Part shown: positions 20,901 through 64,000 of the stretch, piece by piece
How the letters are laid out: each line of letters starts with the position of its first letter
How positions within the stretch are numbered: position 1 is the stretch's first letter
NCBI GenBank assembly: GCA_002269645.1
Contig: NIVC01000352.1
Coordinates: 62,001-126,000 of the forward strand
Source: Macrostomum lignano
Lineage: Eukaryota
Length of the DNA: 64,000 nt
Reading direction: 5' to 3'
Program-made: the position numbers and the translations under genes
The notes under the pieces: generated by a model
The model's input: only the letters and a program-made list of their open reading frames with translations
Database searches by the model: none
What the model was told of the DNA's origin: nothing

Positions 20901-21538
20901 GAGATTTCTCTATCTTACTCACAAGATTTTCCCGCATCCCTGTGGGAGTTTTTCGAATCTTCCAAAGGGATTTCTCCCGTCTCATCTTACTGTAAGACAG
21001 CTTAAATTCGTACCACCAAACCGCCCAGGTGCCGGAGCACATCTCCAAGGACTATCTAAACGACGCTGTTCAGCTATTGAACCCGGCCTCTGTCACTCGA
21101 GTCGACGTTCTGCCCGCACAGCCGCCTCGCCCGGACGACTGGCCGAAGCGCAAAGAGTCTCCGGCGCCGTCCGTCAGCCAATGGACGCCCGACAACGTGC
21201 TGGAGGCGCAGAACATTATGAAGTACAACTTGTCCGTTGTTTACGCTATCAAAGGCGACTTCGATTTGGCTAGGCAGCACCTGCAGGATGTTGTGTACAA
21301 TCCCAAAGGCCAGGGCATGTCGCCGCCATTCCCGGCCCATTTCTACTTTTTTAAGCTCTACTTGGACCTGATGCAGGGCAGGCGCAGTTTTGCCCAACTG
21401 CTATTAAAAGAAACCTTCGGTCATCTGACGCCTAATCCGCCTAATTGGCGCTCTAAGCCGGCCGCCGCCGCCCCCGCTGTGGCGCCGCCGGATGCCTCCG
21501 CTGTGCAGCCGCCACAGGGAGCTCTGCCGCAGCAATAA
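14909..21538 (+). CDS. CNOT10: CCR4-NOT complex subunit 10 (TPR), 5 exons, about 761 aa
   Basis: Exons 14909-15124, 16274-16528, 18403-19112, 19664-20258, 21029-21538 with GT/AG and consistent phases (0,0,2,0); motifs NRAVADY, WNNLACVHFHLGKHNLGAFYL, YELLHNLGLELL, NPRLWLRLAECSI, VVGSGRHRKLLL, GKMYLAEA. Confidence 0.92.
15172..16222. repeat. 29-bp minisatellite (GACCCACTGAAAGATCAGGTGATAGCTGT) filling CNOT10 intron 1
   Basis: Tandem units; interrupted at about 15715-15792. Confidence 0.95.
15718..15792 (-). mobile_element. tRNA-derived SINE head or tRNA pseudogene inserted in the minisatellite
   Basis: Minus strand GGGGCCGTAGCCCAGCGGTAATG...CAGGCTCGATTCCAAG with A-box (TAGCCCAGCGG) and B-box-like (GGCTCGATTCC) motifs. 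Confidence 0.6.
16655..18328. repeat. 23-24-bp minisatellite (GAATCGCCCCAAACCACCCGGAA), about 70 copies, CNOT10 intron 2
   Basis: Tandem units; explains the long repetitive minus-strand ORFs 16602-18388. Confidence 0.97.
19275..19565. repeat. About 42-44-bp composite minisatellite (GATTAGTCTCCCATAATCAGGA/GATTAGTGTCTAAGGTATGA), CNOT10 intron 3
   Basis: Tandem units built from two related half-units. Confidence 0.9.
20323..20900. repeat. 23-bp minisatellite (CAGCGTGAGATTCCTCCGCATCT) with 115-bp 5-mer higher-order repeat, CNOT10 intron 4
   Basis: Variant cagcgtgaaa recurs at 20369, 20484 and 20599 (period 115 = 5 x 23). Confidence 0.93.
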
Positions 21539-23906: not shown

Positions 23907-26900
23907 CTACCAAAAAAGAAGCGACGCTTGGATAGCGCCAGTTCGAGTGCCGAACCAGAGCAGCAGCCAAAAAAGAAGCAGCACTTGGATAGCGCCAATT
24001 CGAGCGCCGAACCAGAGCAGCAGCCAAAAAAGAAGCAGCGCTTGGATAGCGCCAATTCGAGCGCCGAACCAGAGCAGCAGCCAAAAAAGAAGCAGCACTT
24101 GGATAGCGCCAATTCGAGCGCCGAACCAGAGCAGCAGCCACAAAAAAAGCAGCAGCACTTGGATAGCGCCAATTCGAGCGCCGAACCAGAGCAGCAGCCA
24201 AAAAAGAAGCAGCGCTTGGATAGCGCTGGCTCTAGCGCCGAGCCATCTTCGTCAACTTCGACATCGCCAACCCGACCGCTGATGGAATTCAGCTACGCGT
24301 CGGCTTCAGTTGAAGAGTTTCGTTTTGCCGACAAGCGAGTCCGTTTGTTGACTAAAAAAGTGAAAGATTTGCTGCCCGATGGCCGGTGCGTCATCTATTG
24401 GATGTCGCGAGATCAGCGCGTTCAAGGTAAATTGAATTGAAGCATTCTGTGCCACGTGATACAGTGTTATTATCAGTACACAGGAACATTTGCCAGCGAT
24501 GGTGGGGGAGCATATACAATGCGCAGATAAAAATAAGCCTGAATTAAGACTGAATTAAGACTACTGAATTAAACAGTAGCTTATTAGCGTTTTAAGTGAT
24601 TTATAGCCAAATCCAAAATGCTAATAATCAATAATCAAAGCCTATTTCAAAAACAAGTAGTGTTTTTATCAACAGTGCATTGGAGATCTTTAGGATTTAT
24701 TCAAGCATTCTTTTCCTTCAAGCTGCCGGAGCACTCTCTCATCTCCCCCATCTCCCCTCCCCTCCTCTCCCCTCTTCCCCTCCCCTCTCCCCTTATCTCA
24801 CTTCTCTCTCATCTCCCTCTCTCCTCTCTCCCCTTCTCTCCTCTTCTCTCTTGATTGCCTCTCTTCTCTCCTCTCTGTCTCCCGCAGTCATGCGCTTGAT
24901 TCTATATCCGGCCCTTAAATTACATAGGTTTGCCGACCGCGCCGGCTGGAGGGGCTTTTGAGATATTTTCTCAGGCTTTGTTTTAACCCATGGAGTTCTA
25001 TTAATAGCATCTAAAGATAGATATTATGTTCTTATAGAGGTTGAAACATATCCGCTTATCCCCGCAGACAACTGGGCTCTAATCCACGCCCAACGACTGG
25101 CCCTGCGCTCACGACTGCCTTTGTGCGTCGCTTTCAACTTGGTGCCGAAGTTTCTCGACGCCACAATTCGCCAATTCGACTTCCTGCTGCGCGGCCTTGA
25201 ACACGTCGAGACCGAATGCCGACGGCTGGACATCGACTTCCGCCTGCTAACCGGCCAGCCAGTCGATAATCTGCCTCGAATGGTTCGCGACCTGTCAGCT
25301 GCCGCTCTGGTCGCTGATTTCAGCCCGCTGCGCGTGCCGCTCAACTGGGCGAATTCTGTAGCCGCTAAACTGCCGGCCGGGGTGCCCATGTACCAGGTGG
25401 ATGCGCACAATATTGTGCCAGTCTGGCTGGCCTCGGACAAGCTCGAATACGCGGCTAGAACTATACGGCCGAAGATTCATCGCTACCTGGGCGAATATCT
25501 GACCGAATTCCCGCGCATCGAACGGCATCCGTATCGGCTGCCGGAGGCCGACCGGGCCAAGCCGGTTAATTGGAAAGCTGCCAGAGACAGTCTGGAGGTT
25601 GGTGCTCAATATTCAGCATCATCAGCCCGATTACACTTTCATCTACCATTCTAATAATATATCTACCAACTTGTCTACCAATAAAAGTCTGATAGATTGG
25701 CCAGAAATGTGCCGATGCTGGGCTACTGTGTTGGGCAGTTAACAAAAGCGTTACGGCAGTGTAAAAACGGAGCAGTTATGCTGCTTTTATACTGATCCTA
25801 TATATCCATTTGTCCATTGGCTTGTGGCGATTGCCTACTCACCTACCTACCTACCTACCTACCTACCTACCTACCTACCTACCTACCTACCTACTTACTT
25901 ATCTACCTACCTACCTACCACCTACCCACCTACTCTACCTCTCCCTATTCTACTTACTTACCTACCTACTCATACCCCTCTACCTATTGTACATACCTAC
26001 CTTCCTGTCATCAATATTTTCTATTCAGATGCCAATTGGCTCCGTGATAATCCAGAAAACCCATTATATGAGATATGCATTTGGGAGTAGGGCGGCATTT
26101 ACTCGTGCGGCGCAAACGTATAGTTTTTGTCATCACTGTACATTAACAAATTTGTTGACAGCGAGGAACTAAGCAGTCATGCCCAATCACACAAGATGAA
26201 TGTGGCCGCGCATGGAATCGAACGCAAGATATTTGGGTTACGCTAAGCTGCTCTGCTCCACCTCTCTATCCTCATGCCCAGGTGAACATGTCGGTGCTGC
26301 CAGTGAAGTGGGCCGAGCCTGGCCCGGTCGGGGCCAGCCGGACCCTTGCGGAATTTCTGCAGAGTCGGCTGCGCCGGTTTGCCACCGGCCGCAACGATCC
26401 AAATGTGGCCGCGCTTAGCAACCTGTCGCCATGGCTGCACTTTGGCCAAATCAGCGCCCAGCGTTGCGCTTTCGAAGCTAAGAAAGTGAGTCGGATTGTA
26501 AAGATCCGTCATCTGTTCTTTGAGTTCCGTCACCTGTTCTTAGAGATCCTTCACCTGTTCTTTGAGATCCGTCACCTGTTCTTTGAGATCCGTCACCTGT
26601 TCTTTGAGATCCGTCACCTGTTCTTTGAGATCCGTCACCTGTTCTTTGAGATCCGTCACCTGTTCTTTGAGATCCGTCACCTGTTCTTTGAGATCCGTCA
26701 TCTGTTCTTAGAGATGTGTCACCTGTTCTTTGAGATCTGTCACCTGTTCTTTGAGATCCGTCACCTGTTCTTTGAGATGTGTCACCTGTTCTTTGAGATC
26801 CGTCACCTGTTCTTTGAGATCTGTCACCTGTTCTTTGAGATCTGTCACCTGTTTTTAGAGATCTGTCACCTGTTCTTTGAGATCCGTCACCTGTTCTTTG

Positions 26901-29089
26901 AGATCTGTCACCTGTTCTTTGAGATCCGTCACCTTTTCTTTGAGATCCGTCACCTGTTCTTTGAGATCCGTCACCTGTTCTAAGAGATCCGTCACCTGTT
27001 CTTTGAGATCCGTCACCTGTTCTTTGAGATCTGTCACCTGTTCTTTGAGATCTGTCACCTGTTCTTAGAGATCCGTCACCTGTTCTTTGAGATATGTCAC
27101 CTGTTCTTTGAGATATGTCACCTGTTCTTTGAGATCCGTCACCTGTTCTTTGAGATCTGTCACCTGTTCTTAGAGATCCGTCACCTGTTCTTTGAGATCT
27201 GTCACCTGTTCTTTGAGATATGTCACCTGTTCTTTGAGATATGTCACCTGTTCTTTGAGATCCGTCACCTGTTCTTAAAGATCCGTCACCTGTTCTTAGA
27301 GATCCGTCATCTGTTCTTTGAGATCTGTCGCCTGTTCTTTGAGATCTGTCACCTGTTCTTTGAGATCTGTCACCTGTTCTTTGAGATCTGTCACCTGTTT
27401 TTAGAGATCCGTCACCTGTTCTTTGAGATCCGTCACCTGTTCTTAGAGATCCGTCATCTGTTCTTTGAGATCCGTCACCTGTTCTTTGAGATCTGTCACC
27501 TGTTTTTAGAGATCCGTCATCTGTTCTTTGAGATCCGTCACCTGTTCTTAGAGATCCGTCATCTGTTCACCTTTTCTTCTTGGAGAGATCTTGGAGACAC
27601 ATTCTCTTTCTTTAAAGAAGTGAAATGAAAAGTCGGTACTACTAAATGAAACCCATATACAAACGGTATTTGATCCTCTCCCCCTTCCTTCACCGCCAGT
27701 TCCGCCCGTCCCACAAAGAATCAGTGGACGCCTTCATCGAAGAGTCCGTTGTCCGACGCGAATTAGCTGACAATTTCTGTCTGCACAATTCCAACTACGA
27801 TTCACTTGAAGGCGCCTATGATTGGGCGCGCGAAACTCTGCAGCGCCACTCCAGGGACGCACGGCCCTACCTGTACACCCGTCAGGAGCTGGAGGAAGGT
27901 CGGACTCACGACCGGCTGTGGAACGCTGCCCAGCTGCAGATGGTTCGCGAGGCCAAAATGCACGGCTACTTGCGCATGTACTGGGCCAAGAAGATTCTGG
28001 AGTGGACGGAGTCGCCCGCCGAGGCGCTGTCTATTTCTATCTACTTGAATGACAAGTACAATTTGGATGGCCGAGATCCCAATGGCTACGTTGGTTAGTG
28101 CAAATTTATTATGGCTCATTGCATGTTATAAGCAGTTTTATTATTCACTATGACCAGTCCTATGTTCATTATGGGCACTTGGGTAGTCACTATGACCATT
28201 TGGGTATTCAGTCACTATGACCATTAGGGTAGTCAGTCACTATGACCACTAGGGTATTCAGTCACTATGAGCATTAGGGTAGTCAGTCACTATGACCATT
28301 TGGGTATTCAGTCACTATGACCATTAGGGTAGTCAGTCACTATGACCACTAGGGTATTCAGTCACTATGAGCATTAGGGTAGTCAGTCACTATGACCATA
28401 GGGTAGTCAGTCACTATGACCATTAGGGTAGTCAGTCACTATGACCATTAGGGTAGTCAGTCACTATGACCATTAGGGTAGTCAGTCACTATGACCATTA
28501 GGGTAGTCAGTCACTATGACCATTAGGGTAGTCAGTCACTATGACCATTAGGGTAGTCAGTCACTATGACCATTAGTGTTAGTCAGTCACTATGACCATT
28601 AGGGTAGTCAGCTACTATGACCAGTCGGGTAGACACTATGACCATTAGGGTAGTCAGTCACTATGACCATTAGGGTAGTCAGCTACTATGACCAGTCGGG
28701 TAGTCACTATGACCATTAGGGTAGTCAGTCACTATGACCATTAGGGTAGTCAGTCACTATGACCATTAGGGTAGTCAGACACTATGACCAGTCGGGTATA
28801 TTAATGCTGGAGTGAAGCTATCCAATAAACCCACCCCGCAGGCTGCATGTGGTCAATCTGCGGCGTGCACGATCAGGGCTGGGGTGAGCGGGCCGTGTTT
28901 GGCAAGATTCGCTACATGAACTACGATGGCTGCAAGCGCAAATTTGACGTAGAGAAATTCAGCACCCTCTACTGCGGAGCTGGCCCGGCCGCGGGGTCTT
29001 CCCGGCCATCTACTAGCAAAGCTGGCGACAAGAAGCAGCAATCTACACTGCTCAAGTATTTGTCCAAGCCTAAAAATAAGAAGCGCTGA
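23907..29089 (+). CDS. phr: Class II CPD photolyase, 5 exons
   Basis: Exons about 23907-24426, 25068-25597, 26282-26485, 27700-28093, 28842-29089 (phases 1,0,0,1); motifs [80 protein letters not shown]. Start uncertain (acceptor at 23903/23906, or ATG about 24280). Confidence 0.95.
25840..25985. repeat. (CCTA)n microsatellite in photolyase intron 2
   Basis: acctacctacct... run. Confidence 0.9.
26500..27567. repeat. 21-bp minisatellite (GAGATCCGTCACCTGTTCTTT), about 50 copies, photolyase intron 3
   Basis: Starts about 15 bp after the GTGAGT donor at 26486. Confidence 0.97.
28147..28795. repeat. 25-bp minisatellite (CAGTCACTATGACCATTAGGGTAGT) in photolyase intron 4
   Basis: Tandem units, most containing TTAGGG. 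Confidence 0.95.
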
Positions 29090-35436: not shown

Positions 35437-36892
35437 CACCTTTTGCGTTCTATTTCGATTAAACTGCATTCAATTTCGGCAAACTGGCTTTCATTTTCGG
35501 CATCAGCTACGGCCGCACATCCAAACTGCATTTGAAATTTCGGCAAACTGTATTCAATTTCGGCAAGCTGCATTCAATTTCGGCAAACTGCTTAGATTGG
35601 CGCTGTCGAAATTGAGTGCAGTTTGCCGAAATTGAATGCAGTTTGCCGAAATTGAATACAGTTTGCCGAAATTGAGTGCAGTTTGCCGAAATTGAGTGCA
35701 GTTTGCCGAAATTGAATACAGTTTGCCGAAATTGAATACAGTTTGCCGAAATTGAGTGCAGTTTGCCGAAATTGAATGCAGTTTGCCGAAATTGAGTGCA
35801 GTTTGCCGAAATTGAGTGCAGTTTGCCGAAATTGAGTGCAGTTTGCCGAAATTGAATGCAGTTTGCCGAAATTGAATACAGTTTGCCGAAATTGAATACA
35901 GTTTGCCGAAATTGAATACAGTTTGCCGAAATTGAATACAGTTTGCCGAAATTGAGTGCAGTTTGCCGAAATTGAGTACAGTTTGCCGAAATTGAATACA
36001 GTTTGCCGAAATTGAATACAGTTTGCCGAAATTGAATACAGTTTGCCGAAATTGAATACAGTTTGCCGAAATTGAATACAGTTTGCCGAAATTGAGTGCA
36101 GTTTGCCGAAATTGAATACAGTTTGCCGAAATTGAATACAGTTTGCCGAAATTGAGTGCAGTTTGCCGAAATTGAATGCAGTTTGCCGAAATTGAGTGCA
36201 GTTTGCCGAAATTGAGTGCAGTTTGCCGAAATTGAGTGCAGTTTGCCGAAATTGAATGCAGTTTGCCGAAATTGAATACAGTTTGCCGAAATTGAATACA
36301 GTTTGCCGAAATTGAATACAGTTTGCCGAAATTGAATACAGTTTGCCGAAATTGAATACAGTTTGCCGAAATTGAGTGCAGTTTGCCGAAATTGAATACA
36401 GTTTGCCGAAATTGAATGCAGTTTGCCGAAATTGAATACAGTTTGCCGAAATTGAATACAGTTTGCCGAAATTGAATACAGTTTGCCGAAATTGAATACA
36501 GTTTGCCGAAATTGAATACAGTTTGCCGAAATTGAATGCAGTTTGCCGAAATTGAATACAGTTTGCCGAAATTGAATACAGTTTGCCGAAATTGAATACA
36601 GTTTGCCGAAATTGAGTGCAGTTTGCCGAAATTGAATACAGTTTGCCGAAATTGAGTGCAGTTTGCCGAAATTGAATACAGTTTGCCGAAATTGAATACA
36701 GTTTGCCGAAATTGAATACAGTTTGCCGAAATTGAATACAGTTTGCCGAAATTGAGTGCAGTTTGCCGAAACTGTTTCTCGGTTTGTCGAATTCGAATGC
36801 AGTTTGGATGTGCGGCCGTTGCTGATGCCGAAAATGAAAGCCAGTTTGCCGAAATTGAATGCATTTTTATCGAAATAGAACGCAAAAAGGTG
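35437..36892. mobile_element. Foldback-like TIR element (CACC...GGTG, flanked by TA) with about 59 internal copies of a 20-bp repeat
   Basis: About 110-bp inverted arms (caccttttgcgttctatttcg...cggccgcacatccaaactgc and its reverse complement at 36790-36892); the unit GTTTGCCGAAATTGAATACA occurs in both arms and is expanded over about 35600-36770. Confidence 0.85.
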
Positions 36893-44834: not shown

Positions 44835-45965
44835 TCAGAACTTGATTGACACGTCTTTCTGGCGTTGCGTTTCTGCCGACTCCACTGCAGCCGGTAGTCC
44901 GTGGTTCGAGCCCCCCTCCCGTTCGGAAGCCTCGCCGTCGAGCAGGCCGGTCCTGGCCAGCTCCAGGGCGGAGCAGCGGGGAAAGCCGGGCACCGTCACC
45001 GTGTCGTGGAAGCCCTCGTAGTCGATGACGCATTCGCCTGTGTCCGTTGGCAAGATGCTGAGGTCCTCGAAGCGGTGTCCCCAGCGGATCTCCGTTGGCA
45101 GGTAGCTGGTCCGGGCCTCCGTGGTGGCGCCCGTCGAGATCACGACGCCGTTCATGAAGACCAGCAGCTCAAAGTCGGCCGCGTAGAGGTCCTTGGCGGA
45201 CATGTTCCAAAATGGCGAGCCGCTGTCGATTCTGTGCTGGACAACTACCGGCCAGCCGAGGAAGAGGCGGGCATCGCCGCCGTCCAGGCCCATGTTGATG
45301 ACCTGCTGCTCCAGTAAGAGCGTCTCGCCTTCAGCGGTGAGTCGCCGCTTCACCAGGACGCCGCGCACGCTGCAGTCGATGAGGTGAGAATGGCGAGCGT
45401 CGCCAACGCGGCAGAGCAGCACGAGATGCCCGTCGCGGCTGCAGATTGCCGCATTTTTGCTGAACAGCAGCGTGCCTGTCCGGTTCTTCGACTTCGTCAG
45501 CTTGGCCAGCACCGCGCCAGTCATCAGCGTCGTGATGATGAGGTTGCTGTAGGACTGCAGCGTCACCAGCAGCACCGCAATCGGGCACTTGTCCGACGGC
45601 GACCGCGACCCGTAGCCGATGGTGATCTGCGTCTCCATGGAGAACAGCAGCGTGGCCAGGAAGGAGTTCACGTTGAGTAGGCAGGGCTCGAACCCCAGCG
45701 GCGGGGTGGTCAGGTAGTCTCCATGGCCGTAGCTGAGCGCCCACCAGAAGAAGGTGAAGAGCAGCCAGCAGCTGAAGAAGGCGGAGAAGAACACGGCTAG
45801 GCAGTAGCGCCACTTCATGTCCACCAGGGTGGTGAAGATGTCGCCAAAGTAGCGGCGCTTCCGCTTCCGCACGTTGCTATGGACGACGTTGCACTTGCCG
45901 TTCTTCATCACCAGCCTGTCGTAGCCTCGCATGCGCATGATGGCGAACTGCGACTCGCGGCGCAT
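44835..45965 (-). CDS. Inward-rectifier potassium channel (Kir), single exon
   Basis: RLVMKNGKCNV, DIFTTLVDMKWR, FSMETQITIGYGSR pore, conserved extracellular Cys pair, ARTSYLPTEIRWGHRF. Confidence 0.95.
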   Translation of the reverse strand: MRRESQFAIMRMRGYDRLVMKNGKCNVVHSNVRKRKRRYFGDIFTTLVDMKWRYCLAVFFSAFFSCWLLFTFFWWALSYGHGDYLTTPPLGFEPCLLNVNSFLATLLFSMETQITIGYGSRSPSDKCPIAVLLVTLQSYSNLIITTLMTGAVLAKLTKSKNRTGTLLFSKNAAICSRDGHLVLLCRVGDARHSHLIDCSVRGVLVKRRLTAEGETLLLEQQVINMGLDGGDARLFLGWPVVVQHRIDSGSPFWNMSAKDLYAADFELLVFMNGVVISTGATTEARTSYLPTEIRWGHRFEDLSILPTDTGECVIDYEGFHDTVTVPGFPRCSALELARTGLLDGEASEREGGSNHGLPAAVESAETQRQKDVSIKF

Positions 45966-46680
45966 GATGGCGGACTGGCCAAGACTGCCAATTGATTGAT
46001 GGATGCTGAATTGAGGGGTCCGAGGACAGGTCGCTTGGAGGCTGGGGCTCGCATTATTGTCACCATTAAGTAACCGAGGGAGCGGAAAAACCAGTTTTTC
46101 TAAGGAACGAACTGGCTTGAAGCGGTTGGCTGATAGTTACTGTGTTCCTTTCTCTTTCTCTCTCTCTCTCTCTCATTGAGCTGCTTTAGTTTGAGTAGTT
46201 TCCATTAGTAGCGACATTCAATGTCAGTTCCATCGAAGCGGCGATTAGTTAGATATTTTATACGGTGCCCCCACGTAAAGCTGGCCTCGAATTGAACAGA
46301 TCGAGTTGAAACTCTATTGTATAATATGTTGCTTAGATTTATAAAAAAAGATATTTGATAAATGCAATACATTTCGGCTTAAAAATTGCATGCCAAAAAG
46401 CAACTATTATAAAAAACTGTTCAAAAGTTACTTAAAAGATTGAAGACAAGCAGTTAACAAATGCGCGAGATGCTACTATACCCCAGCAGTAACGTGTAAC
46501 AAATGGGTAATGAGGAAAGCACGACGGGAGCTCCTCGCTAAGAAAGCTAAAAATAGCAATAAGAATGCAGCCAATAACAGCTGGGCTCAGGAGAATCCGC
46601 GCTAACCAAACTGTGCAATAAAAAAGAGCAACCAGAGAATATCAACTGATCATGGATAAGACAGCTTAGAGAGATTAGCG

Positions 46681-49600
46681 ATGCCAAGACCAATAGCAGT
46701 CTCGGCAACAACACCAGAAATCCTGCCGTCGTCGGTTCATTCGCTAGCGTTGGCCATCTCGTTGCCGACGCTGGGCCTGGTGGCGCTGTGCGCTCTGGCC
46801 TGCGTCTGCTGCTGGCGGAGGAAGCGCAAGACCCGAGCTCGCCTGTTTGACCGGCTGGGCGAGGAGGCCAAGAGTGCAAGAACGACGGTCAGGTGACTTT
46901 TGCTGGTGGAGTGGATAAACTGATACAGGGACATTGCTGCTGGTTTGATTAACGGTACCTAAAACAAGGTGGAAGGCTCTACTGAAGGAGGACACTTAAG
47001 CGTTTACAGATATATGGATAGATAGACAGATAGATAGACAGACAGATAGATAGACCGATAGATAGACCGCTAATCCAGACCGAACCCTCAAACCGCAATG
47101 CAGGAAACTGACTCATAAGGCAAACCGAGCGGGCAGGCGGCTGGCCGCACCGAAGGCAGCGTCAGCTCCGAAGCTGATGCGGATGGTCTCAACAGTGCTG
47201 CAGCAGCTGCCGTCTGAGCAGCGCAGGCAGAAGTCTAAGCAGCATCGATCAGCGCGGAGGTCTTCATACATGTGCTGGCAGGATGCGGAGCGGAGGAAGG
47301 ATGAGCAGAAAGCGCCAGAGCAGCTGCCACATACAGACAGCTGGGTGAAGCGATCTGCGACGAGCGATGCTATTGAAGGCAAGAATGCAAGGCTGCAGTG
47401 TAAAGTATAGCTAGCTGCAGTCTGCTGCAGGACTTGGATTCACAAAAATACTTAAAATCATCTGATTCCGATAGACCGAAAAATTCGACTTAAATAAGGA
47501 TCCGACCACGCTTTGAAAAGGAAACGAATTATATTAGACTCCAATGACTGTTAGACAAGTATTTGCTCAAGACTACAAAGCCAGCTAAAAATAGATTTAC
47601 CAGTAATGAATAAGATAGGGTTGAGACTACAATGAATAGAGCGTGCCAGGCTATACCTCAGGCGCAGAGAGCAGAGAGCTAGGGCGCAGAGAGCTAGGCG
47701 GAGGGTTTACAACTGGCCAAATCCAAGATGTGCTCACTTTTCCCGGATTTATATCCCTCAAATGCTGCATCATCTCAGGTTTTTTGCTTCTCAAACTTGC
47801 CAGCAAGGTACGCTTGTCAGCGTAGACCACTGTAGTTTGGGTTGGTCAAGATTTCTCTCTCAGAGACTTTCCCAGTCATTGGGGTGTGTTTCCAGACTCT
47901 CCCAGTCATTGGGGTGTGTTTCCAGACTCTCCCAGTCATTGGGGTGTGTTTCCAGACTCTCCCAGTCATTGGGGTGTGTTTCCAGACTCTCCCAGTCATT
48001 GGAGTGTGTTTCCAGACTCTCCCAGTCATTGGAGTGTGTTTCCAGACTCTCCCAGTCATTGGAGTGTGTTTCCAGACTCTCCCAGTCATTGGGGTGTGTT
48101 TCCAGACTCTCCCAGTCATTGGAGTGTGTTTCCAGACTCTCCCAGTCATTGGGGTGTGTTTCCAGACTCTCCCTGCATTCATTGGTGTAGTTCCAGACTC
48201 TCCCTGCATTCATTGGTGTAGTTCCAGACTCTCCCTGCATTCATTGGTGTAGTTCCAGACTCTCCCTGCATTCATTGGTGTAGTGCCAGACTCTCCCTGC
48301 ATTCATTGGTGTAGTTCCAGACTCTCCCTGCATTCATTGGTGTAGTTCCAGACTCTCCATGCATTCATTGGTGTAGTTCCAGACTCTCCCTGCATTCATT
48401 GGTGTAGTTCCAGACTCTCCCTGCATTCATTGGTGTAGTTCCAGACTCTCCCTGCATTCATTGGTGTAGTGCCAGACTCTCCCTGCATTCATTGGTGTAG
48501 TTCCATACTCTCCCTGCATTCATTGGTGTAGTTCCAGACTCTCCCTGCATTCATTGGTGTAGTTCCAGACTCTCCCTGCATTCATTGGTGTAGTTCCAAA
48601 CTCTCCCTGCATTCATTGGTGTAGTGCCAGGCTCTCCCTGCATTCATTGGTGTAGTTCCAGACTCTCCCTGCATTCATTGGTGTAGTTCCAGACTCTCCC
48701 AGTCATTGGTGTATTACCAGACTCTTCCAGTCATTGGGGTGTTGCCAAACTTTCCCAGTCATTGGTGTATTACCAGACTCTTCCAGTCATTGGGTTGTGT
48801 TTCCAGACTCTCCCAGTCATTGGGGTGTATTACCAGACTCTCCCAGTCATTGGGGTGTGTTTCCAGACTCTCCCAGTCATAGGGGTGTATTACCAGACTC
48901 TCCCAGTCATTGGGGTGTGTTTCCAGACTCTCCCAGTCATTGGTGTATTACCAGACTCTCCCAGTCATTGGGTTGTGTTTCCAGACTCTCCCAGTCATTG
49001 GGTTGTTGCCACTCACTCCCCATCCCAGTCATAGTGATATGACCGTCCGCCCCTACTCTTTGCTCCCTTCCCACAGGCACGGATGCGGGCCTAGGCCAAA
49101 TCCAGCTGGGCATACGGTACGACAGACGGCACCGGTTCCTGACTGTGGCGCTGCTGCAAGCGGCAAATCTGCAGCTGCCTCCAAACCAAAAGCCGCCGCA
49201 GCAGGTTCAAGCGCTGTTGCAGATCCTACCGCCGCAAGGTAGCCGCCACCAAGAGTTCAACGACACCTTCCAGACTCCGCCAGCTGAGTTCAATTCAGGT
49301 CAACCCAACTGGCGATACGCGTTCAAATTTGTGCAGTTCCCGGGCCTGCTAGCCAGCTGGCAGCTGCGGGTGGCGGTGCGGCTGGCAGCGGAAGATCAGG
49401 AAGACGGGACGCCGCGCTCACTTGTCCAGCAGCCGGCGCACCTCGGCGAGACTTGGCTCGATTTGGCAAAGTTTTCGCGACTGTCAGAGTCGTCATCAAC
49501 TTCAACGCAAAACTCGTCGTCATCTTCGGCGACGGCGCCCGTCGAATCGCCGGCAAAGTGCGCAGACGATGGAGAGAAGCAGCGGCGACGGCAGCGACGG

Positions 49601-50184: not shown

Positions 50185-53100
50185 TCACGAATTTTTGGCT
50201 ACAACTAAGTGCAGACTGCGCAGCATCTTCACTAGTTTGAAATCGTCATCGCTGAGCTGCGATGTGTCCACCTTGGCAACAGATGAGTTGTCCTTAGCAA
50301 CTGGCGAGGCCTTAGCAACCGACGAGTCCTTAGCAACCGAAGAGTCCTTAGCAACCGACGAGTCCTTAGCAACCGACGAGTTTGTCTTAGCAATAGGCTT
50401 CTTTTCTTCAGTAGCTAACGTATTCTCCTTAGCAACCAACGAATTCTCCTGAGCTGGTCCCGTAGCAACCGGTGCCTCAATAACACTGGAATTTTTATCT
50501 GGCGCTGGCAACTCGGCCCATACGCTGTCGTTCATAGGAGCGCATTCCAGAAACCGGGTCACTCGCTTCTTAGCATCCCCCTGCACAGCCGATTCGGGCC
50601 TGTACAGCCAGTAGAAACGGCACTGCAAGCTGGCCGACAGCTTGCGCACCGACGACAGGCAGCGGTGGAACTCGAAGAAGCCCAGGTCGTCGGGCGAGGG
50701 CGCAGACGGCGCCAGCAGCAGGTCAATCGGCAGGGCGGCACCGAGACGGTCGTCTTCCAGCAGTTCTACATCACCGAGATTGACAACTTGGCTGTCGTTG
50801 TTGATAGACGCTGTTGATTTTGCCGACAGACTAGAGGCCATCAGCAAAGTGGAGGTGAGCCCAGCTGCCTGCAGCAGCTTTAAGCTGAGCCCCTGCTGGT
50901 CGAACAGCACCAGGACGCGCAGCAGGCGAGTTGGGCTAGATTCGCGATCGAGCTGAGGCCTGAGGGGGTGGGTACACGGTGTGGCTGAGGCTTAAGCCCG
51001 TCGGTAACCAGTGGTCCGAACTGAAGTATCTGAGTTTGTCAAGACTGATGGGGAATATTCCCACCTGAGGGATCAATACATCTACACGGATGGGAAAAAT
51101 TCCCACCTGAGGGATCAATATGTCAAGACTGATGGGAATATTCCCACCTGAGGGATCAGTGTATCAACACGGATGGTGAATATTCCCACCTGAGGGATCA
51201 ATATGTCAAGACTGATGGGGAATATTCCCACCTGAGGGATCAATATGTCAAGACTGATGGTGAATATTCCCACCTGAGGGATCAAGACGTCAAGACTGAT
51301 GGTGAATATTCCCACCTGAGGGATCAATATATCAACACGGATGGGAAATATTCCCACCTGAGGGATTAATATATCAACACGGATGGGAAATATTCCCACC
51401 TGAGGGATCAATATATCAACACGGATGGGAAATATTCCCACCTGAGGGATCAATATGTCAAGACTGATGGGGAATATTCCCACCTGAGGGATCAATATGT
51501 CAAGACTGATGGGGAATATTCCCACCTGAGGGATCAATATGTCAATACTGATGGGGAATATTCCCACCTGAGGAATCAATATCAACACGGATGGGAAATA
51601 TTCCCACCTGAGAGATCAGTGTGTCAGGACTGATGGGGAACATTCCCACCTGAGGAATCAATACGTCAATACTAAATAGGATTGGGGGATCATAACTGAA
51701 TGACGTCAGTAGCCTGGCCTGTCAGGACGCAGGCAATAACAAAACTGTTACTAAACACAGTGCAAAACAAGTCTGATCTGTCCTTACCGACCAGCGGGTC
51801 GCAGCAGGCCCATCGGAGCGGACATGCACAGACAGCAAATCCAGTCAGTAGCGTCAGGCTCCAAGTAGGTGGCCAGGGCCCAGGCGGCCGGGCCGACAAG
51901 AAGGGTGAGACAGGCCTGCGGGAACACGGATACGGCTGATGACAGTCATCGGGATGTGGACAAGATCAGATAGGATGCAGACAAGATCAGAGAGGATGCG
52001 GACAGGATCAGAGCGGATGCAGACAAGATCAGAGAGGATGCAGACAAGATCAGAGAGGATGCAGACAAGATCAGAGAGGATGCGGACAAGATCAGAGAGG
52101 ATGCGGACAAGATCAGATAATGTAGGCAAGATCTGAGAGGATGCGGACAAGATCAGAGAGGATGCAGACAAGATCAGAGAGGATGCGGACAGGATCAGAG
52201 TGGATGCGGACAAGATCAGAGAGGATGCGGACAGGATCAGAGTGGATGCGGACAAGATCAGAGAGGATGCGGACAAGATCAGAGAGGATGCGGACAAGAT
52301 CAGAGAGGATGCAGACAAGATCAGATAGGATACGGACAAGATCAGAGTGGATGCGGACAAGATCAGAGAGGATGCGGACAGGATCAGAGTGGATGCGGAC
52401 AAGATCAGAGAGGATACGGACAAGATCAGAGCGGATGCGGACAAGATCAGAGCGGATGCGGACAAGATCAGAGAGGATGCGGACAAGATCAGAGAGGATG
52501 CGGACAAGATCAGATAATGTAGGCAAGATCTGAGAGGATGCGGACAAGATCAGAGAGGATGCGGACAGGATCAGAGTGGATGCGGACAGGATCAGAGTGG
52601 ATGCGGACAGGATCAGAGTGGATGCGGACAAGATCAGAGAGGATGCGGACAAGTCAGAGAGGATGCGGACAAGATCAGATAATGTAGGCAAGATCTGAGA
52701 GGATGCGGACAAGATCAGAGAGGATGCGGACAAGATCTGAGAGGATGCGGACAAGATCAGAGGATGCAGACAAGATCAGAGAGGATGCGGACAAGATCAG
52801 AGAGGATGCAGACAAGATCAGAGAGGATGCGGACAAGATCAGAGAGGATGCGGACAAGATCAGAGAGGATGCGGACAAGATCAGAGAGGATGCGGACAAG
52901 ATCAGAGAGGATGCGGACAAGATCAGAGGATTGCGGATGAAGCCATGAAGCCGGTAATACCTGGCAGAACAGTCGTTTGCAGCCTGTGCAAGTGGCCGCC
53001 TGCACGCGCAGCGCATCGCGCACACAGAGCAGGCGCGGGCGCCCACGCCGATGACGGCAGCGGCAAGGGCGTCATTTACCCGGCGGCTGCAGGGCTGACA

Positions 53101-54829
53101 CAGCTGGCCAGCGAATACGGGATGCTGGATAGCCGGGTCGCTGGCCGCCGAGCCGCCGCAGGCCAGACAGTAGTCAGGCTCGTTGATCCGGCTGCGCCTG
53201 TAGTTCCGCATCAGCTGGTCTGTGATAGGACGCGAACCCGGTACCTCCAGGCAATCGTTATCGTGGCTACCGCCGCTGCTACTGCCACTGGGACCTCCGC
53301 TTCTGTCTTCTCCCTCTCTCTTCTCCTTTGTTCCGACAGCTTGGTTAGGCTTTTTGCAGCCCCGTCCCACTGTTGAAGCGGCGGTCGCGCTCTGCTCAAA
53401 GTCGGAGTCGCTGTCGACCGCGGCGGCGGCTGATGTGACTGGACGACTCTGTGCAGCTGGGATGAGATGGTGCATCGAAGCATTTCATTGCGCAGTGCGT
53501 GGCGTTACCTTCAAGACCAAAGCATCAAACAGGACCCAGGGTCTTGCGCTATGGACAACCAAGGCAGAAGGACGCTGGACTGAAGCCAGCAGGTGTTTCG
53601 TCCGAGCTGCGCTCACAAGTTTATCAAGCTGTTTTTTTAACTGCTGCCGGAGACCGGCAAGCAAGCAAAGTTGCGGCGAAATTCCAGCTGCTCCTGTCTC
53701 TGCAGGACGGATTTGTCTATGGTAAAAACCTGCATAGTTTTATGTATGTAAAAAACCAAATCTCTGCAGTCGTTTAGAAAAGCTCTCCAATGATTTTTTA
53801 AACTTTTTTCTCTTGAAAAAAACTTGTGAGCGCCCCTCGGAGAAAACACCTGCTGGCTTCATCTGCAATTCGGAAGTCCAGCAGGTGAGGTATTGGGAAT
53901 TCAGTGCAGAAAAACTGAAAACTTCTTATCTCGCCAATGCATTCATATTCATACATGCGCAACTGCTGGCCAACCTGGCCGATCCGGCCACCGTAAATTG
54001 TGGTGGACCAGGTGGACCAAGTCGCATTTTTTATAAAAAAAGTAAGTCGTATGGCCAGTGTAAATCAGGGGGGGGGGGTTGCGCATGCATGTTTATAAAG
54101 ATTTCTTTTTTATTATTTAATATTATTGAGGGGTGTTTAAATTATTTTCTTGTTTTAGAAGTAGACCATATCTGTAGACGAACATGGATTTCATAAGACA
54201 GCAGCTAAACACTGACCAGGCGCGCCGCTTCTAACGTAGGAACGCCGGTGCCGCTCGCGCATGCTGTCCAGGCAGCGCTCGGCCCACTCGGACAGCCGAC
54301 AACCGTCGCCGCCGTTCAACAGCGCCTGCTGGCCGGCCTCCAGCTCGGCTAGCGACTCTCGTAGCCGGCCAAGCGCAACCCGGCTGGTCAGGGCGCCGCG
54401 CGCCAACAGCTCGTCCAGCAGGCGGACTAGGCCGCGTTGCTGCATCGAGCCGCTAGCGGGGGCGCCAGCACCAGCCGCAGGCAGATGGACCAGGGCTTTC
54501 TGGCTGCTCAGTGGCAGCAGGGATTTCTGAGCAACTTCGGACACTTTGCCTTCGGCTAGCCAAAGCAGCCAGCGCCAGCCTGGCCGAGCCGGGCGAAGGT
54601 GGCAGCGCCAGCCGGACACAACCATGCCGGGATAATGGCGCGCACCCCATGGCGCCCAGGCCAGAGCGCCGAAGTCTTCAACTAGCTCGCCCGACTGGGG
54701 GGCCAGCATGTTGTCAGCGGAGCTGACGGCGTTGCCCGATTCGTTGTCGGATGCGGATGAAGAGTCAGACGACTCATTGTAGTTGTTGCTGACAGGCCTG
54801 GGTCGCTTGGTTGCGCCGCGGGAAGGCAT
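50185..54829 (-). CDS. DNMT3: DNMT3-family protein (PWWP + ADD + catalytically degenerate, truncated MTase domain), 4 exons, about 670 aa, with an apparent 1-nt frameshift at about 53019
   Basis: Exons 54217-54829, 52961-53456, 51788-51915, 50185-50959 (phases 1,0,2 consistent). PWWP: ALAWAPWGARHYPGMVVSGW...RWLLWLAEGKVSEV. ADD: CLACG..HPVFAGQLCQPC-19aa-CSVC..CTGCKRLFCQACLTLLVGP..WICCLC..GLLRP. MTase-like: LRVLVLFD..LGDV..PIDLLL..FFEFHRCL..FYWLY..VTRFLECAP..VWAELP. Confidence 0.88.
51045..51665. repeat. 42-bp minisatellite (GGAATATTCCCACCTGAGGGATCAATATGTCAAGACTGATGG), DNMT3-like intron 3
   Basis: About 15 tandem units. Confidence 0.95.
51955..52930. repeat. 21-bp minisatellite (GATCAGAGAGGATGCGGACAA), DNMT3-like intron 2
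   Basis: About 45 tandem units with a recurring taatgtaggc variant. Confidence 0.96.
53950..54091. mobile_element. Minimal (142-bp) MITE family B copy in DNMT3-like intron 1
   Basis: catacatgcgcaac ... gttgcgcatgcatg; internal sequence matches both ends of the 6781-7646 element; TSD not clearly preserved. Confidence 0.8.
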
Positions 54830-59804: not shown

Positions 59805-60800
59805 CAATCAGGTATATTTAGGTATATCAGGTATATTAGGTAGCTGCAAGGGGCGTCCAGTGGATGTAGCGAGGAGGCAGAGGGAACCGCCCATTTCGCT
59901 AGTCCCTGGCAACCAATGACTTCCATTGAAGTGATGTCACCCAGGGGGACCCGTCGCTCTTGCTTGCAGCGCGGTCCTCCCCACTGGCGGTAGGGAAGAA
60001 GTCAGCTCATCCCATGTCCCTAAGGTACAGGGTGAGTAGTGGGATGCTCTCGGGCCTGCAAATGTCGGAGAGAACTTGGTTTGGCCCAAGGTGAGTGAGC
60101 CTGGCCTTGGTGAAAACCGGGCAGTGGCAGATAAAATGCTTGGCGTTTTCACTGCCTGAGCAGCAGAAGGGGCACTGCTCCTCAGGTACTTGGCCCTGAA
60201 GGAAATGGTGGCAAGAGAAGCAGCCATGCCCAGAAAGGGCCTGCTAACTGCTCTAAGGTCTCTGTGGTTGAGCCTGAGGAGGGCTCTACTCAGGAGAGGA
60301 GAGGGGCAAAGGATGGCCGCATGGGATTGCCTACAATTCTGAGTGTCGTGCCACCTGCGGAGATGCTCGGAGTCAGTCCAGCACTTAATGCAGGAGTTGA
60401 TCACCAAAGCGGGGATGGGGGCTCCCGGGCCTGGCCATAGCAGCACGCCGGCGAAGCCAGCCTTGGCCAGCAGGTCAACGCGCTCGTTGCCAAGGAAGCC
60501 GGCGTGGCCCGGGATCCATCTGAGCTTCACCTGGTTGCCTAGCGCAAGCCTGTTGAGTTGGGTGTTGCAGTCCAGGATGGACCTGGAGCTGGCAGTGCTG
60601 CGGCAAAGGGCCCGAAGGGCTGCTTGGCTGTCAGAGTGAAAAATAAATTTCCAACTGCTAAGCTGCCTTTGGCGCAACTCTGCCGCGTAGGAGCTGATGG
60701 CAAGCACCTCGCTCTGAAAAACACTGGAGTTGAGCCCAGTGTGCTAGGAGTAGCTCCACCCAACTTCTCCCTTGAAGAAGATGCAAGCTCCGAAGCCTGA
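59805..60800 (-). mobile_element. 5'-truncated non-LTR retrotransposon (RNase H-bearing, I/Loa/Tad-like): RNase H, CCHC knuckle, 3' UTR and short-repeat tail
   Basis: QSEVLAI, IFHSDSQAAL, VKLRWIPGHAGFLGNERVDLLAK; shifted-frame CPFCCSGSENAKHFICHCP; tail (tacctaa/tacctga)n at about 59805-59845; frameshifted. Confidence 0.85.
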
Positions 60801-61976
60801 AAGCCTGAAAATAAATGCTAATAGTGATATATTCTTTATTAGATTTAGAAATTTCATAGATTTTATTCTTGTTCTTGCATCTTTATTTAGAGAATCAATC
60901 AAAAAGTGACAGATCGAAAAGGCAATAGTCTAAAGGGCCATAACTATAACAAATACATATATTAGCCTTGTATTTATTAAAATGTATAATAGGCCCAATT
61001 AAAATATATTAGACTTCTACTATTATTCTACATGCATATATATTGATACTAAGGCAGGCATTATTTTAAATAGCTATCAAAATTTATGTTGCTTAGAAAT
61101 AAGAATAAACTTTATTTGAGTATAATATTTGTTATTTTTGCCTTTCAATGTCAATGTCATTTAACAACTATTTTATTTTAAAAGCTTTATGCATTAATTT
61201 TAGACAAAGATAACATGAAACAAGTCATACTTGCCTTCCTATATTCATGTCTAAAAAAGTTGCAAAGATTATTAACAATATTTAGCAAGTACTAAGAGTA
61301 AGAGATTAGACTCAGACTAGCAATCTAGTGCCCCCTTTAGGATGCCCAATAAGCAAAGAACAAAAATATTCATGCAAATTCATTAAAAAGCACATTTTCT
61401 TAAGAACCAATTCTTTTTTCAGTTTTATAAATCACCTTATTTGTGTAAACTTCTCATAGGCAAAGATTTTTATGTTTATTATGAATTTGTTTCTAAAAAA
61501 TAACAAAAGGACAACAAAATAAAGCCTTCACAAAGATAACAAGTATTCCCCTTATATAGAAAGCATCTCCTAGACTGCAAACATCCTTCTAAATAGCATG
61601 CATCTCTAGATGGCAAGCATCCCCCAATAATAAGTATCTCACAATGGCAAACATCCCTTAGATAGCAAGCATAGTAAGCACCCCCCATATAGCAAGTATC
61701 ATCAGAAAAATAGTATATTTCCATCATTGGAAGTCTTAGTAATTATTTTTGTTATAAATTAACAGCTTTATAAAAATCTCTTATATGAATTCTATTTTAG
61801 TTACTTTTAGTTGCTTAATGTAGTTAATTGTTCCAGTATGTGATGGCTCGGCACTTCACTGCATGCCAACTGCTGCGCATACGCAGAGCCGGTAGACCTG
61901 CCCTGTTTTCCTGGTCTGGTCCGCCAGATACTTACCCATCCAGCCAGTGCCTGCAAACCCCTTATCTCGCTTTACA

Positions 61977-62450
61977 ATGAGCATCCTGTGCCCATGCGCA
62001 GCCTCCAGCAGTGGTGCCTCATCTGGCGCCGAGGCCAAGTACTCGGTCGGCCGGGGCAACAAGCTGTCAGCCGAGCAGGTCAGTCGTCAAATCGATCGAC
62101 AGTTGAAAGCCGACCGGGAGCTTCGACGCCACGAACGCCGCATCCTGTTGCTAGGCACTGCAGCTAGCGGTAAAAGTACATTTCTGAGATCGATGCGTAT
62201 TATACACGAGGATCGATTCTCTGAGCAGGAGCTGCTCAGTTTCAAGTCAGTTATCTATTGCAATATTTGGCGCGGCCTGATGAAATTGCTGTACGTTAAA
62301 AAACGGCTTGGCATTCGCTGGGAGAATAATAAAACTGGCGTACCGGCTGTTAAAGCGCTGCTGGCTCTGGAGAAGGAAATTGGCCACTCGGCGCTCATGG
62401 CCTGCGGCCTGCGCGAGGATCAGTTCCTCAGGGCAGCGCCTTTTATTCAG
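61977..62450 (+). CDS. Heterotrimeric G-protein alpha subunit, G12/13-like, first coding exon (gene continues beyond window)
   Basis: SRQIDRQL, RILLLGTAASGKSTFLRSMRIIH, IYCNIWRGL; N-terminal Cys5/Cys7, no Gly2; phase-0 donor CAG/GTATTT at 62450. Confidence 0.9.
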
Positions 62451-62477
62451 GTATTTCTGTTTGCATGCTCTCCTGTG

Positions 62478-63750
62478 ATTATTATCCATTAGGTCATTAG
62501 GGTTTTGTTAGCTTTCCCATGATTGTCCATTAGGCCATTAGCATTTTTCTTGCTTTAATTCCCATGATGATTATCCATTAGGTCATTAGCGGTTTTCTTG
62601 CTTTAATTCCTATGGTGATTATCCATTAGGTCATTGAGGTTTTCTTGCTTTAATTCCCATGATGGTTATTCATTAGGTCATTAGCGGTTTTCTTGCTTTC
62701 CCATGATGATTATCCATTAGGTCATTAGCAGTTTTCTTGCTTTAATTCCCATGATGGTTATTCATTAGGTCATTAGCGGTTTTCTTGCTTTCCCATGATG
62801 ATTATCCATTAGGTCATTAGCGGTTTTCTTGCTTTCCCATGATGATTATCCATTAGGTCATTAGCGGTTTTCTTGCTTTCCCATGATGATTAACCATTAG
62901 GTCATTAGCGGTTTTCTTGCTTTAATCCCTATGGTGATTATCCATTAGGTCATTAGCGGTTTTCTTGCTTTAATTCCCATGATGATTAACCATTAGGTCG
63001 TTAGCGGTTTTCTTGCTTTAATTCCAATGATGATTATCCATTAGGTCATTAGCGGTTTTCTTGCTTTCCCATGATGATTATCCATTAGGTCATTAGCGGT
63101 TTTCTTGCTTTCCAATGATGATTATCCATTAGGTCATTAGCGGTTTTCTTGCTTTCCCATGATGATTATCCATTAGGTCATTAGCGGTTTTCTTGCTTTC
63201 CCATGATGATTATCCATTAGGTCATTAGCAGTTTTCTTGCTTTAATTCCCATGATGGTTATTCATTAGGTCATTAGCGGTTTTCTTGCTTTCCCATGATG
63301 ATTATCCATTAGGTCATTAGCGGTTTTCTTGCTTTCCCATGATGATTATCCATTAGGTCATTAGCGGTTTTCTTGCTTTAATCCCTATGGTGATTATCCA
63401 TTAGGTCATTAGCGGTTTTCTTGCTTTAATTCCCATGATGATTAACCATTAGGTCGTTAGCGGTTTTCTTGCTTTAATTCCAATGATGATTATCCATTAG
63501 GTCATTAGCGGTTTTCTTGCTTTCCAATGATGATTATCCATTAGGTCATTAGCGGTTTTCTTGCTTTCCCATGATGATTATCCATTAGGTCATTAGCGGT
63601 TTTCTTGCTTTCCCATGATGATTAACCATTAGGTCATTAGCGGTTTTCTTGCTTTAATTCCCATGATGATTATCCATTAGGTCATTAGCGGTTTTCTTGC
63701 TTTCCCATGATGATTATCCAGTAGGTCATTAGCAGTTTTCTTGCTTTCCC
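62478..63750. repeat. 44/48-bp minisatellite (CCCATGATGATTATCCATTAGGTCATTAGCGGTTTTCTTGCTTT[AATT]), G-alpha intron 1
   Basis: About 28 tandem units beginning about 30 bp after the donor. Confidence 0.96.
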
Positions 63751-64000
63751 AAGAGGACTATCTATTTAGTCATAGGGTTTCGACTACTAAAATATGATTT
63801 GCCATTACCTGGGTTGGAAGGGCCAGTGTCCTATAGCTGTTTGTGAATTCCAATCCGATTGCCACATGTACAGGAAACTTTTACTAATGAAATGTTATTG
63901 GGAAACTGGCTGCTATCCGACAAGCGGCGCACTAATCGCTATCCGTATTTGATAGGAATGAGTCAATCAGGCCAGCAGCAGTCAGTTTCTTATGGGCAAG

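Follow-up and report, generated by a model that had tools for sequence, protein, structure and literature searches.

A predicted non-catalytic DNMT3 paralogue in the flatworm Macrostomum lignano and its possible role as an accessory partner of the active DNMT3

What could a DNMT3-family gene be kept for once its catalytic motifs are gone? This question is raised by a four-exon gene on the minus strand (54829-50185) of a 64-kilobase (kb) window of the Macrostomum lignano assembly Mlig_3_7 (GCA_002269645.1), contig NIVC01000352.1; the window is the whole stretch of DNA that was analysed, and coordinates refer to it unless another contig is named. The gene is annotated as the hypothetical protein BOX15_Mlig004102g2 (P0001, 438 amino acids). 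We compared it with the active M. lignano DNMT3 (BOX15_Mlig034009g1, 846 amino acids; P0002), which has two near-identical copies (P0003 and P0004). The contig of the active DNMT3 is referred to as L002, and contig NIVC01000372.1, which carries a second copy of the window gene, as L004. The explanation we favour, to which we give an even chance, is that an ancient lineage-specific DNMT3 duplicate turned into a pseudo-methyltransferase that serves as a non-catalytic partner of DNMT3.

The window protein is a member of the DNMT3 family, composed of a PWWP domain, an ADD domain and a truncated, five-strand Rossmann-like methyltransferase remnant. An original prediction, made from the sequence alone, had proposed a PWWP-ADD-methyltransferase-like order collinear with DNMT3A, and this order was recovered with significant matches by phmmer, tblastn and Pfam. 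Against PDB, phmmer matched DNMT3A (E 1e-19, 73.6 bits) in three ordered stretches, namely the PWWP (independent E-value 1e-5), the ADD (1e-7) and the N-terminal half of the methyltransferase domain (0.1), while DNMT3L aligned in one continuous stretch (query 288-555 versus DNMT3L 40-307, E 1e-14, 57 bits). tblastn with P0002 located the PWWP exon in the window (3e-20, 42% identity) and, with P0002 residues 517-708, the methyltransferase-like part of exon 4 (7e-19). Pfam PF17980 (ADD_DNMT3) scored 28.5-31 bits, over its gathering cut-off of 26; the PHD half of the ADD, which is in frame only after the one-base correction described below, scored 9.5 bits with PF21255, below the cut-off of 27. 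Eleven of the 12 ADD zinc cysteines are aligned, all four in the GATA-like finger and seven of eight in the PHD finger. The Pfam PWWP model found no match in the window protein, nor in the active P0002.

The original prediction had also called for profile and structure alignment to DNMT3A and DNMT3L, and a C5-methyltransferase-like fold was aligned both by phmmer and by AlphaFold2 (AF2) with Foldseek. The AF2 model of exon 1 has a PWWP barrel with a predicted local distance difference test score (pLDDT) of ~90, and its top Foldseek matches are the PWWP domains of DNMT3A/3B (E 6e-6). The AF2 model of the exon 4 domain (pLDDT 72, predicted template-modelling score 0.73) was matched to DNMT3A/3B methyltransferase domains (query template-modelling score, TMq, 0.61-0.71; E 2.5e-8); the input alignments of these models consisted of DNMT3s, which biases them toward DNMT3 folds. 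In a HMMER search over 1.84e9 representatives, the best matches of the methyltransferase-like domain were all DNMT3s.

When the window protein is aligned with P0002 and DNMT3s from eight other animal sequences, the catalytic motifs are lost throughout, just as the original prediction had read them from the sequence. Motif I changes from LFDGIGTG to LFDQQGLS (the predicted FDG to FDQ), motif II from ASEID to ASSL, with loss of the Glu, and motif VI from FENV to YRPE, again as foreseen. At motif IV, the P0002 segment GGSPCSQLSAANPNRQGLASESGLL is aligned to APSAPSPDDLG; the PC loop is deleted and no Cys is left, in line with the predicted APSAPSP. The predicted absence of the RARYFW arginines appears in the alignment as deletion of the motif VIII RxR segment SAQRRARLF. 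P0002 residues 709-846, which hold the target recognition domain (TRD) and motifs IX and X, had no tblastn match to any reading frame across the 64 kb, and the SSVAKD-repeat tail said to replace motifs IX and X is present as an 18-nucleotide (nt) repeat. The segments predicted to be kept (GDV, PIDL, FFEF, FYW and RFLE) do align with P0002. Pfam PF00145 found no match in the window protein even at E up to 10; P0002, in which PC, ENV and RxR are intact as they are in P0003 and P0004, scores 66 bits. An exon restoring PC, ENV and motifs IX-X, which the original prediction had named as evidence that would overturn it, was looked for across the 64 kb and none was found; extra downstream exons supplying motifs IX and X are rejected because of the empty P0002 tblastn search together with a convergent neighbour gene that ends 480 bp beyond the window gene's stop. 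Loss of the Cys loop, of ENV and the RxR segment, and of the TRD with motifs IX and X means that the window protein cannot act as a C5-methyltransferase on DNA.

The genome does hold an active paralogue of the kind that the original prediction had proposed to search for, namely P0002/3/4. M. lignano retains DNMT1 and DNMT3 and has low 5-methylcytosine (5mC) (PMC11292947, PMC9246332). P0002 (L002 20080-21380) has oddities of its own: its motif III reads GSV, not GDV, and its PWWP motif is SYPA.

Which DNMT3 features does the window protein keep? The retention of FF segments had been predicted, and in the HMMER alignment FFEFHR and TRFLE align with DNMT3A F732, R736 and F772, so that the equivalents of these FF-interface residues are kept. 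In prior work, F732, R736 and F772 were placed in the hydrophobic FF interface, the surface by which DNMT3A/B pair with DNMT3L or among themselves (PMC10908127). The window protein has no counterpart of the C-terminal region that makes up the RD interface and binds DNA. The PWWP motif is non-canonical (HYP/SYP) and the residue equivalent to F303 of the cage is not aromatic; both features are common to the window protein and the active enzyme. The cage is degenerate, as the original prediction had it, but this is no sign of decay since the active M. lignano DNMT3 shares it. Less of the predicted ADD function survives. DNMT3A D529 and D531 act in reading of unmethylated histone H3 lysine 4 (H3K4me0) and in autoinhibition (PMC10393158); the corresponding region is I/G/V in the window protein, whereas P0002 keeps GDDG, and H3K4me0 sensing by the window ADD, which had been claimed, seems doubtful.

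We propose that the FFEFHR and RFLE helices, which carry the FF interface, would dock the window protein onto the active DNMT3 (P0002/3/4). Since the protein lacks the C-terminal RD-interface region, it would take the end positions of DNMT3 oligomers and cap DNMT3 dimers, an arrangement modelled on the 3L-3A-3A-3L and 3B3-3A-3A-3B3 tetramers. In mammals, DNMT3L and the inactive DNMT3B3 isoform occupy the oligomer ends. The conserved PWWP could contribute chromatin or DNA anchoring, and the ADD, its zinc scaffold kept and its H3K4me0 aspartates lost, may have a structural or other binding role. A partner or stimulator function is what we infer from such analogies. We hold with somewhat less confidence, a little short of an even chance, that flatworms evolved a hard-wired, PWWP-bearing DNMT3 accessory subunit which pairs with DNMT3 through the FF interface and tunes sparse 5mC.

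Whether such a protein can be made depends on the reading frame. Exons were deduced by three-frame translation and inspection of splice sites. The ATG lies at 54829 and is preceded by an in-frame stop, the TAA lies at 50187-50185, all introns are canonical GT..AG, and the P0001 annotation uses the same three introns as those deduced here. The features of the gene are as follows (a slash within letters marks a splice site).

54217..54829, minus strand: exon 1, 613 nt; Ser-rich N-terminus with KRPRP, then PWWP; donor CTG/GTCAGT, phase 1
54679-54485, minus strand: PWWP beta-barrel in exon 1, residues 51-115; a helical bundle then runs to about residue 199
53457..54216, minus strand: intron 1, 760 nt, AT-rich
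52961..53456, minus strand: exon 2, 496 nt; acidic/Ser-rich linker, GATA1-like finger of the ADD and first half of the PHD finger
53169-53158, 53100-53089 and 53031-53020, minus strand: zinc-ligand sites CLAC, CQPC and CSVC of exon 2
53007..53008, minus strand: frameshift site; the window reads ...ATGCGCTGC-GCGTGCAGG and the second copy ...CTGCGGCGTGCAGG, with one G more
End of exon 2, minus strand: ...CKRLFCQ/ with donor CAG/GTATTA, phase 0 in the corrected frame
51916..52960, minus strand: intron 2, nearly all a 21-nt minisatellite (51952-52928, 47 copies)
51788..51915, minus strand: exon 3, 128 nt; second PHD-finger half of the ADD, ACLTLLVGPAAW...DWICCLC...GLLRPAG; donor TCG/GTAAGG, phase 2
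50960..51787, minus strand: intron 3, mainly a 42-nt minisatellite (51037-51673, 15 copies)
50185..50959, minus strand: exon 4 as a whole, 775 nt
50479..50959, minus strand: 5' part of exon 4, methyltransferase-like domain, residues 414-573; keeps LRVLVLFDQQG, LGDV, PIDLL, FFEFHR, FYWLYRPE and TRFLE
50185..50478, minus strand: 3' part of exon 4, low-complexity tail with the SSVAKD repeat (18-nt unit at 50290-50381); the second copy has one 18-nt unit fewer

Minisatellite arrays (units of 17-44 nt, tens of copies) crowd introns and intergenic DNA across the window, with examples at 1304-2145, 16652-18336, 26502-27568, 35607-36771, 47883-48992 and 62476-63780. Tandem Repeats Finder returned 33 rows with a score of at least 150 in the window, where one (GATA)210 run is also present. 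Introns at the active DNMT3 locus are likewise almost wholly minisatellite (L002 14166-15100 and 16900-19300).

The gene models of Mlig_3_7 come from a genome-guided transcriptome (PMC5730564), and such models, P0001 with all three deduced introns among them, argue for transcription of the locus. A literature search found no paper mentioning the locus tag.

The original prediction had the four exons splicing in phase, and this part did not hold. The exon lengths (613 + 496 + 128 + 775) sum to 2012 nt, which is no multiple of 3. The junction of exons 1 and 2 is in frame and the break lies inside exon 2, where the frame of CLAC...CQPC...CSVC differs from that of the ...CKRLFCQ leading into exon 3. 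Read literally, the mRNA runs out of frame after CSVC and meets an early stop in exon 4, which gives exactly the 438-amino-acid P0001; a G added between 53008 and 53007 gives a 670-codon open reading frame (ORF). An 80-nt GC-rich mini-intron at 53079-53000 (CGG/GTAAAT...GTGCAG/) would also restore the frame. We rejected it because it would delete the CSVC zinc ligands, whose position is collinear with DNMT3, transcriptome-based models skip it and the second copy, having one base more, reads through it.

The second copy lies at the very start of contig L004 and was found via a neighbouring inwardly rectifying potassium (Kir) channel gene; a third genomic copy was sought in the same way, and only two contigs carry that neighbour. 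Exon 2 of the second copy (...CSVCAMRCGVQAATCTGCKRLFCQ up to the splice site) is in a single frame thanks to one extra G at 53008/53007, and its annotated 378-amino-acid product is in frame through the 3' part of exon 2, exon 3 and exon 4. The second copy has frame-breaking 1-nt indels of its own at L004 60 and 1006 (window 54350 and 53401), in exon 1 and early exon 2, which is why its NCBI model starts at an internal Met. Both public gene models are truncated by single-base indels, in complementary ways.

Comparison of the two copies across 4.7 kb shows ten 1-nt indels, eight of them in homopolymers, but only two substitutions and the one 18-nt repeat unit of difference. The 1-nt indels, at L004 positions 60, 369, 601, 759, 805, 1006, 1400, 1756, 2721 and 3276, are spread alike over exons and introns. 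L004 1-7448 (versus window 54408-47262) is substitution-identical to the window contig, except for 1-nt indels; beyond about L004 7449 (window ~47261) divergence is ordinary and rich in substitutions, with 3-4% in noncoding sequence and 11 substitutions in the Kir coding sequence. This abrupt switch marks either a tract homogenised between homeologues or, at the end of the contig, an overlapping or chimeric assembly. One unit of the 42-nt array, at 51135, is 41 nt long in the window and 42 nt in the second copy, which suggests that the window contig also drops bases. Mlig_3_7 is a Canu PacBio assembly polished only with Pilon (PMC5730564). In our judgement the true gene is quite probably in frame, and the frameshift in the window a long-read consensus or assembly error.

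How old is this gene and where did it come from? In a codon comparison with the validated P0002 coding sequence, the proportion of synonymous differences is 0.68 and the synonymous divergence (dS) ~1.8, which is saturated and corresponds to ~0.9 per lineage since the duplication. Saturated synonymous divergence means that the duplication is old and unrelated to the recent polyploidy, which gave the three near-identical active DNMT3 copies P0002/3/4. Domain-wise ratios of nonsynonymous to synonymous divergence (dN/dS) versus P0002 are limited by the saturated dS and are pairwise, not branch-specific; for the PWWP core this ratio is 0.12 and 27 of its 32 residues match P0002, which indicates purifying selection on the core. 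Recent gene conversion of the PWWP core is rejected, since third codon positions are only 47% identical and different codons encode 14 of those 27 residues. In simulations, an intact 670-codon ORF survived 0.1 neutral substitutions per site in <1% of runs, and the 300 codons 3' of the frameshift survived 0.2 neutral substitutions per site in 1.5% of runs. The neutral decay that the original prediction had said would count against it is not what we found: the corrected ORF is stop-free over 670 codons, with the constrained PWWP core and 11 of 12 zinc cysteines. These data show a coding gene kept for nearly all its history, not a long-dead pseudogene.

A phylogeny against metazoan DNMT3s had been suggested as a check. 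In a neighbour-joining (NJ) tree over 355 ungapped columns, in which DNMT3L itself is absent, the window protein and P0002 form a clade with 99.8% bootstrap, and the branch of the window protein is ~2.7x longer. Its methyltransferase-like part is 34% identical to other animal DNMT3s, versus 55% for P0002. By this clade, and by its higher phmmer score against DNMT3A than against DNMT3L, the window gene is an old lineage-specific duplicate of M. lignano DNMT3 and no DNMT3L orthologue, which agrees with the predicted origin independent of mammalian DNMT3L. The active DNMT3 is the closest relative of the window protein (34-38% identity overall) and differs from it in having at least nine exons versus four, a 150-amino-acid N-terminal extension, motifs I, IV, VI, VIII, IX and X and the ADD GDDG patch, and at least one intron at a different position.

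The two loci share a neighbour. A Kir channel gene adjoins both (window 44835-46052, minus strand; L002 29037-33738, minus strand), with ~55% protein identity; it is a single exon in the window and multi-exon at the active locus, and its relative orientation differs. The paired Kir genes suggest that a whole segment was duplicated long ago, after which introns were lost or an inversion took place. The window gene has three introns versus at least eight in the P0002 gene. Fewer introns might point to a simple retrocopy, which is unlikely as the sole origin because the Kir gene was duplicated alongside. Window intron 2 (52961/51915; FCQ/ACL, phase 0) lies 16 codons 3' of a P0002 intron (L002 ~16835/19339; GNQ/AMC, phase 0), and the coding sequence between the two positions is homologous and lies on opposite sides of the introns. 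Window introns 1 and 3 have the same phase as nearby P0002 introns at offset positions. Such differences between the paralogues imply that introns were lost and that others were gained or slid.

Several points weigh against a kept, non-catalytic DNMT3 partner. The window frameshift may be real: the density of indels falls with distance from the end of contig L004, most discrepancies between the copies are probably errors in that contig, and the repairing G could be one of them, although the chance that a compensating error fell within the right 100 nt seems slim. Parts of the protein other than the PWWP have a pairwise dN/dS of 0.4-0.6, again at saturated dS, values at which relaxed and purifying selection on this branch are not distinguishable. 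Neither an orthologue from another species nor a transcript-derived protein was found in three protein searches, in which a word-indexed search with the whole protein returned only P0001 and P0002, a search with the protein of exons 3 and 4 returned nothing, and the exhaustive HMMER search of 1.84e9 representatives returned nothing beyond variants of M. lignano DNMT3 and active DNMT3s of animals; the annotated 378-amino-acid product of the second copy was likewise returned by none of these. Without the beta6-beta7 hairpin and motif X the methyltransferase remnant may not fold stably, and its AF2 model is biased toward DNMT3 folds. The H3K4me0-binding aspartates are lost. The existence of the protein, its interaction with DNMT3 and its effect on methylation are proposals.

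If the deletion after CSVC is real, the locus could be a recently inactivated gene, able to encode at most a 438-amino-acid product of PWWP and half an ADD with an out-of-frame tail; the C-terminal half of the ADD and the methyltransferase-like exons would then be fresh, undecayed relics, and redundancy in a neopolyploid could permit such a loss. The frameshift is present in the window sequence as well as in NCBI model P0001, both annotated models are short (438 and 378 amino acids), and the indels of the second copy cluster at a low-coverage contig end, where the extra G may be an error. We nevertheless consider recent inactivation unlikely. Neither copy has a stop in the DNMT3 frame over the 300 downstream codons, and therefore constraint was lost less than ~0.1 substitutions per site ago, versus a dS of ~0.9 per lineage. 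Indels far outnumber substitutions between the copies, with eight of ten in homopolymers, which is the signature of consensus error, and the 41-nt unit at 51135 suggests base loss in the window contig itself.

Granting a maintained protein, its role might still lie elsewhere. It could be a chromatin protein independent of DNMT3, a PWWP/ADD reader or scaffold in which the methyltransferase remnant is only a structural or protein-binding module. The strongest constraint does fall on the PWWP (dN/dS 0.12) and not on the methyltransferase-like part, 5mC in M. lignano is only low (PMC11292947), and a DNMT3-independent role was likewise suggested for Daphnia DNMT3.1, whose loss altered gene expression. 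This account is improbable in our view, since FF residues are kept in a fast-evolving domain (34% versus 55%) and continued pairing with DNMT3 is the simplest reason for that. The same FF-interface evidence would also serve a negative regulator, which caps DNMT3 via the FF interface without the stimulatory contacts of DNMT3L and limits oligomerisation or activity, and would thereby contribute to the low methylation reported in M. lignano (PMC11292947). Such a role is purely inferential and the known inactive partners, DNMT3L and DNMT3B3, stimulate and do not inhibit; we regard it as very unlikely. A non-catalytic DNMT3 partner remains the explanation that we prefer.

Other ORFs of the window resemble, by eye only, a TRMU/MnmA-like tRNA 2-thiouridylase (10558-11655), a CNOT10-like protein (18331-21538) and a DNA photolyase (25121-28098) that is interrupted by a 21-nt minisatellite intron. 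A G-protein alpha subunit (61947-62492) is supported by Pfam G-alpha in the locus table. A 256-amino-acid ORF (59937-60707, minus strand) with ...RWIPGHAGFLGNERVDLLAKAG... resembles, by eye, a retrotransposon RNase H domain.

Why would a non-catalytic partner in a flatworm matter? The phylum Platyhelminthes includes parasitic flatworms and the planarian Schmidtea, from which DNMT1 and DNMT3 have been lost (PMC11292947, PMC9246332). If flatworms did evolve an accessory subunit of this kind, recruitment of a dead paralogue would be a recurrent solution in de novo methylation, found in mammals, Daphnia, plants and Platyhelminthes. An independent case would show which DNMT3 features are indispensable for an accessory role, namely the FF interface, the PWWP and the zinc scaffold, but not H3K4me0 sensing. 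With transgenesis and RNA interference, M. lignano would be a tractable invertebrate in which to ask whether such partners stimulate, target or restrain methylation. The public gene models at both copies merit re-examination because of their truncation by single-base indels.

Inactive paralogues that regulate active siblings recur in methyltransferases, as in DNMT3L, DNMT3B3, DRM3 and METTL14. Mammalian DNMT3L is, like the window protein, an inert DNMT3-derived paralogue with an ADD zinc scaffold and a methyltransferase-like fold bearing the FF phenylalanines, and in both proteins the RD interface and the DNA-binding elements are missing. The window protein differs from it in its independent origin, its retained PWWP, its repeat-encoded low-complexity tail and the loss of the K4me0-sensing ADD aspartates that DNMT3L uses. 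Human DNMT3B3 (PDB 6pa7 and 9e05 among the matches) is closest in domain architecture, with a PWWP, an ADD and a crippled methyltransferase domain, and it is expected to take the outer tetramer positions via the FF interface, as proposed here for the window protein. DNMT3B3 is a splice product of an active gene and lacks 63 internal residues, whereas the window protein is encoded by a separate gene and its losses go much further (PC loop, ENV, TRD and motifs IX/X).

The original prediction had cited DNMT3L as described in amniotes and had seen a convergent case in an invertebrate; the independent origin stands, but an invertebrate precedent exists in Daphnia magna DNMT3.1 (PMC8016896). That protein has a diverged methyltransferase domain without 5 of 6 motifs and was likened to DNMT3L (PMC8016896; Nguyen et al. 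2020); the other Daphnia paralogue is the one without PWWP, DNMT3.2 is motif-complete, and DNMT3.1 has a mutant phenotype (PMC8016896). As in the worm, a DNMT3 paralogue with a crippled methyltransferase domain exists alongside a motif-complete sibling; compared by description only, DNMT3.1 arose by a separate duplication in another phylum and is reported to keep motif VI, where the window protein has RPE. Arabidopsis DRM3 is a catalytically mutated paralogue of a Dnmt3-type de novo methyltransferase and is needed for the function of the active enzyme (PMC2965745). This plant protein has rearranged motifs, UBA domains and no PWWP or ADD, and the likeness is a functional analogy only. The concept is thus known already from DNMT3L, DNMT3B3, DRM3 and Daphnia DNMT3.1, and the worm gene is an independent new case with an unusual combination of a kept PWWP, lost K4-reading residues and a very short methyltransferase remnant.

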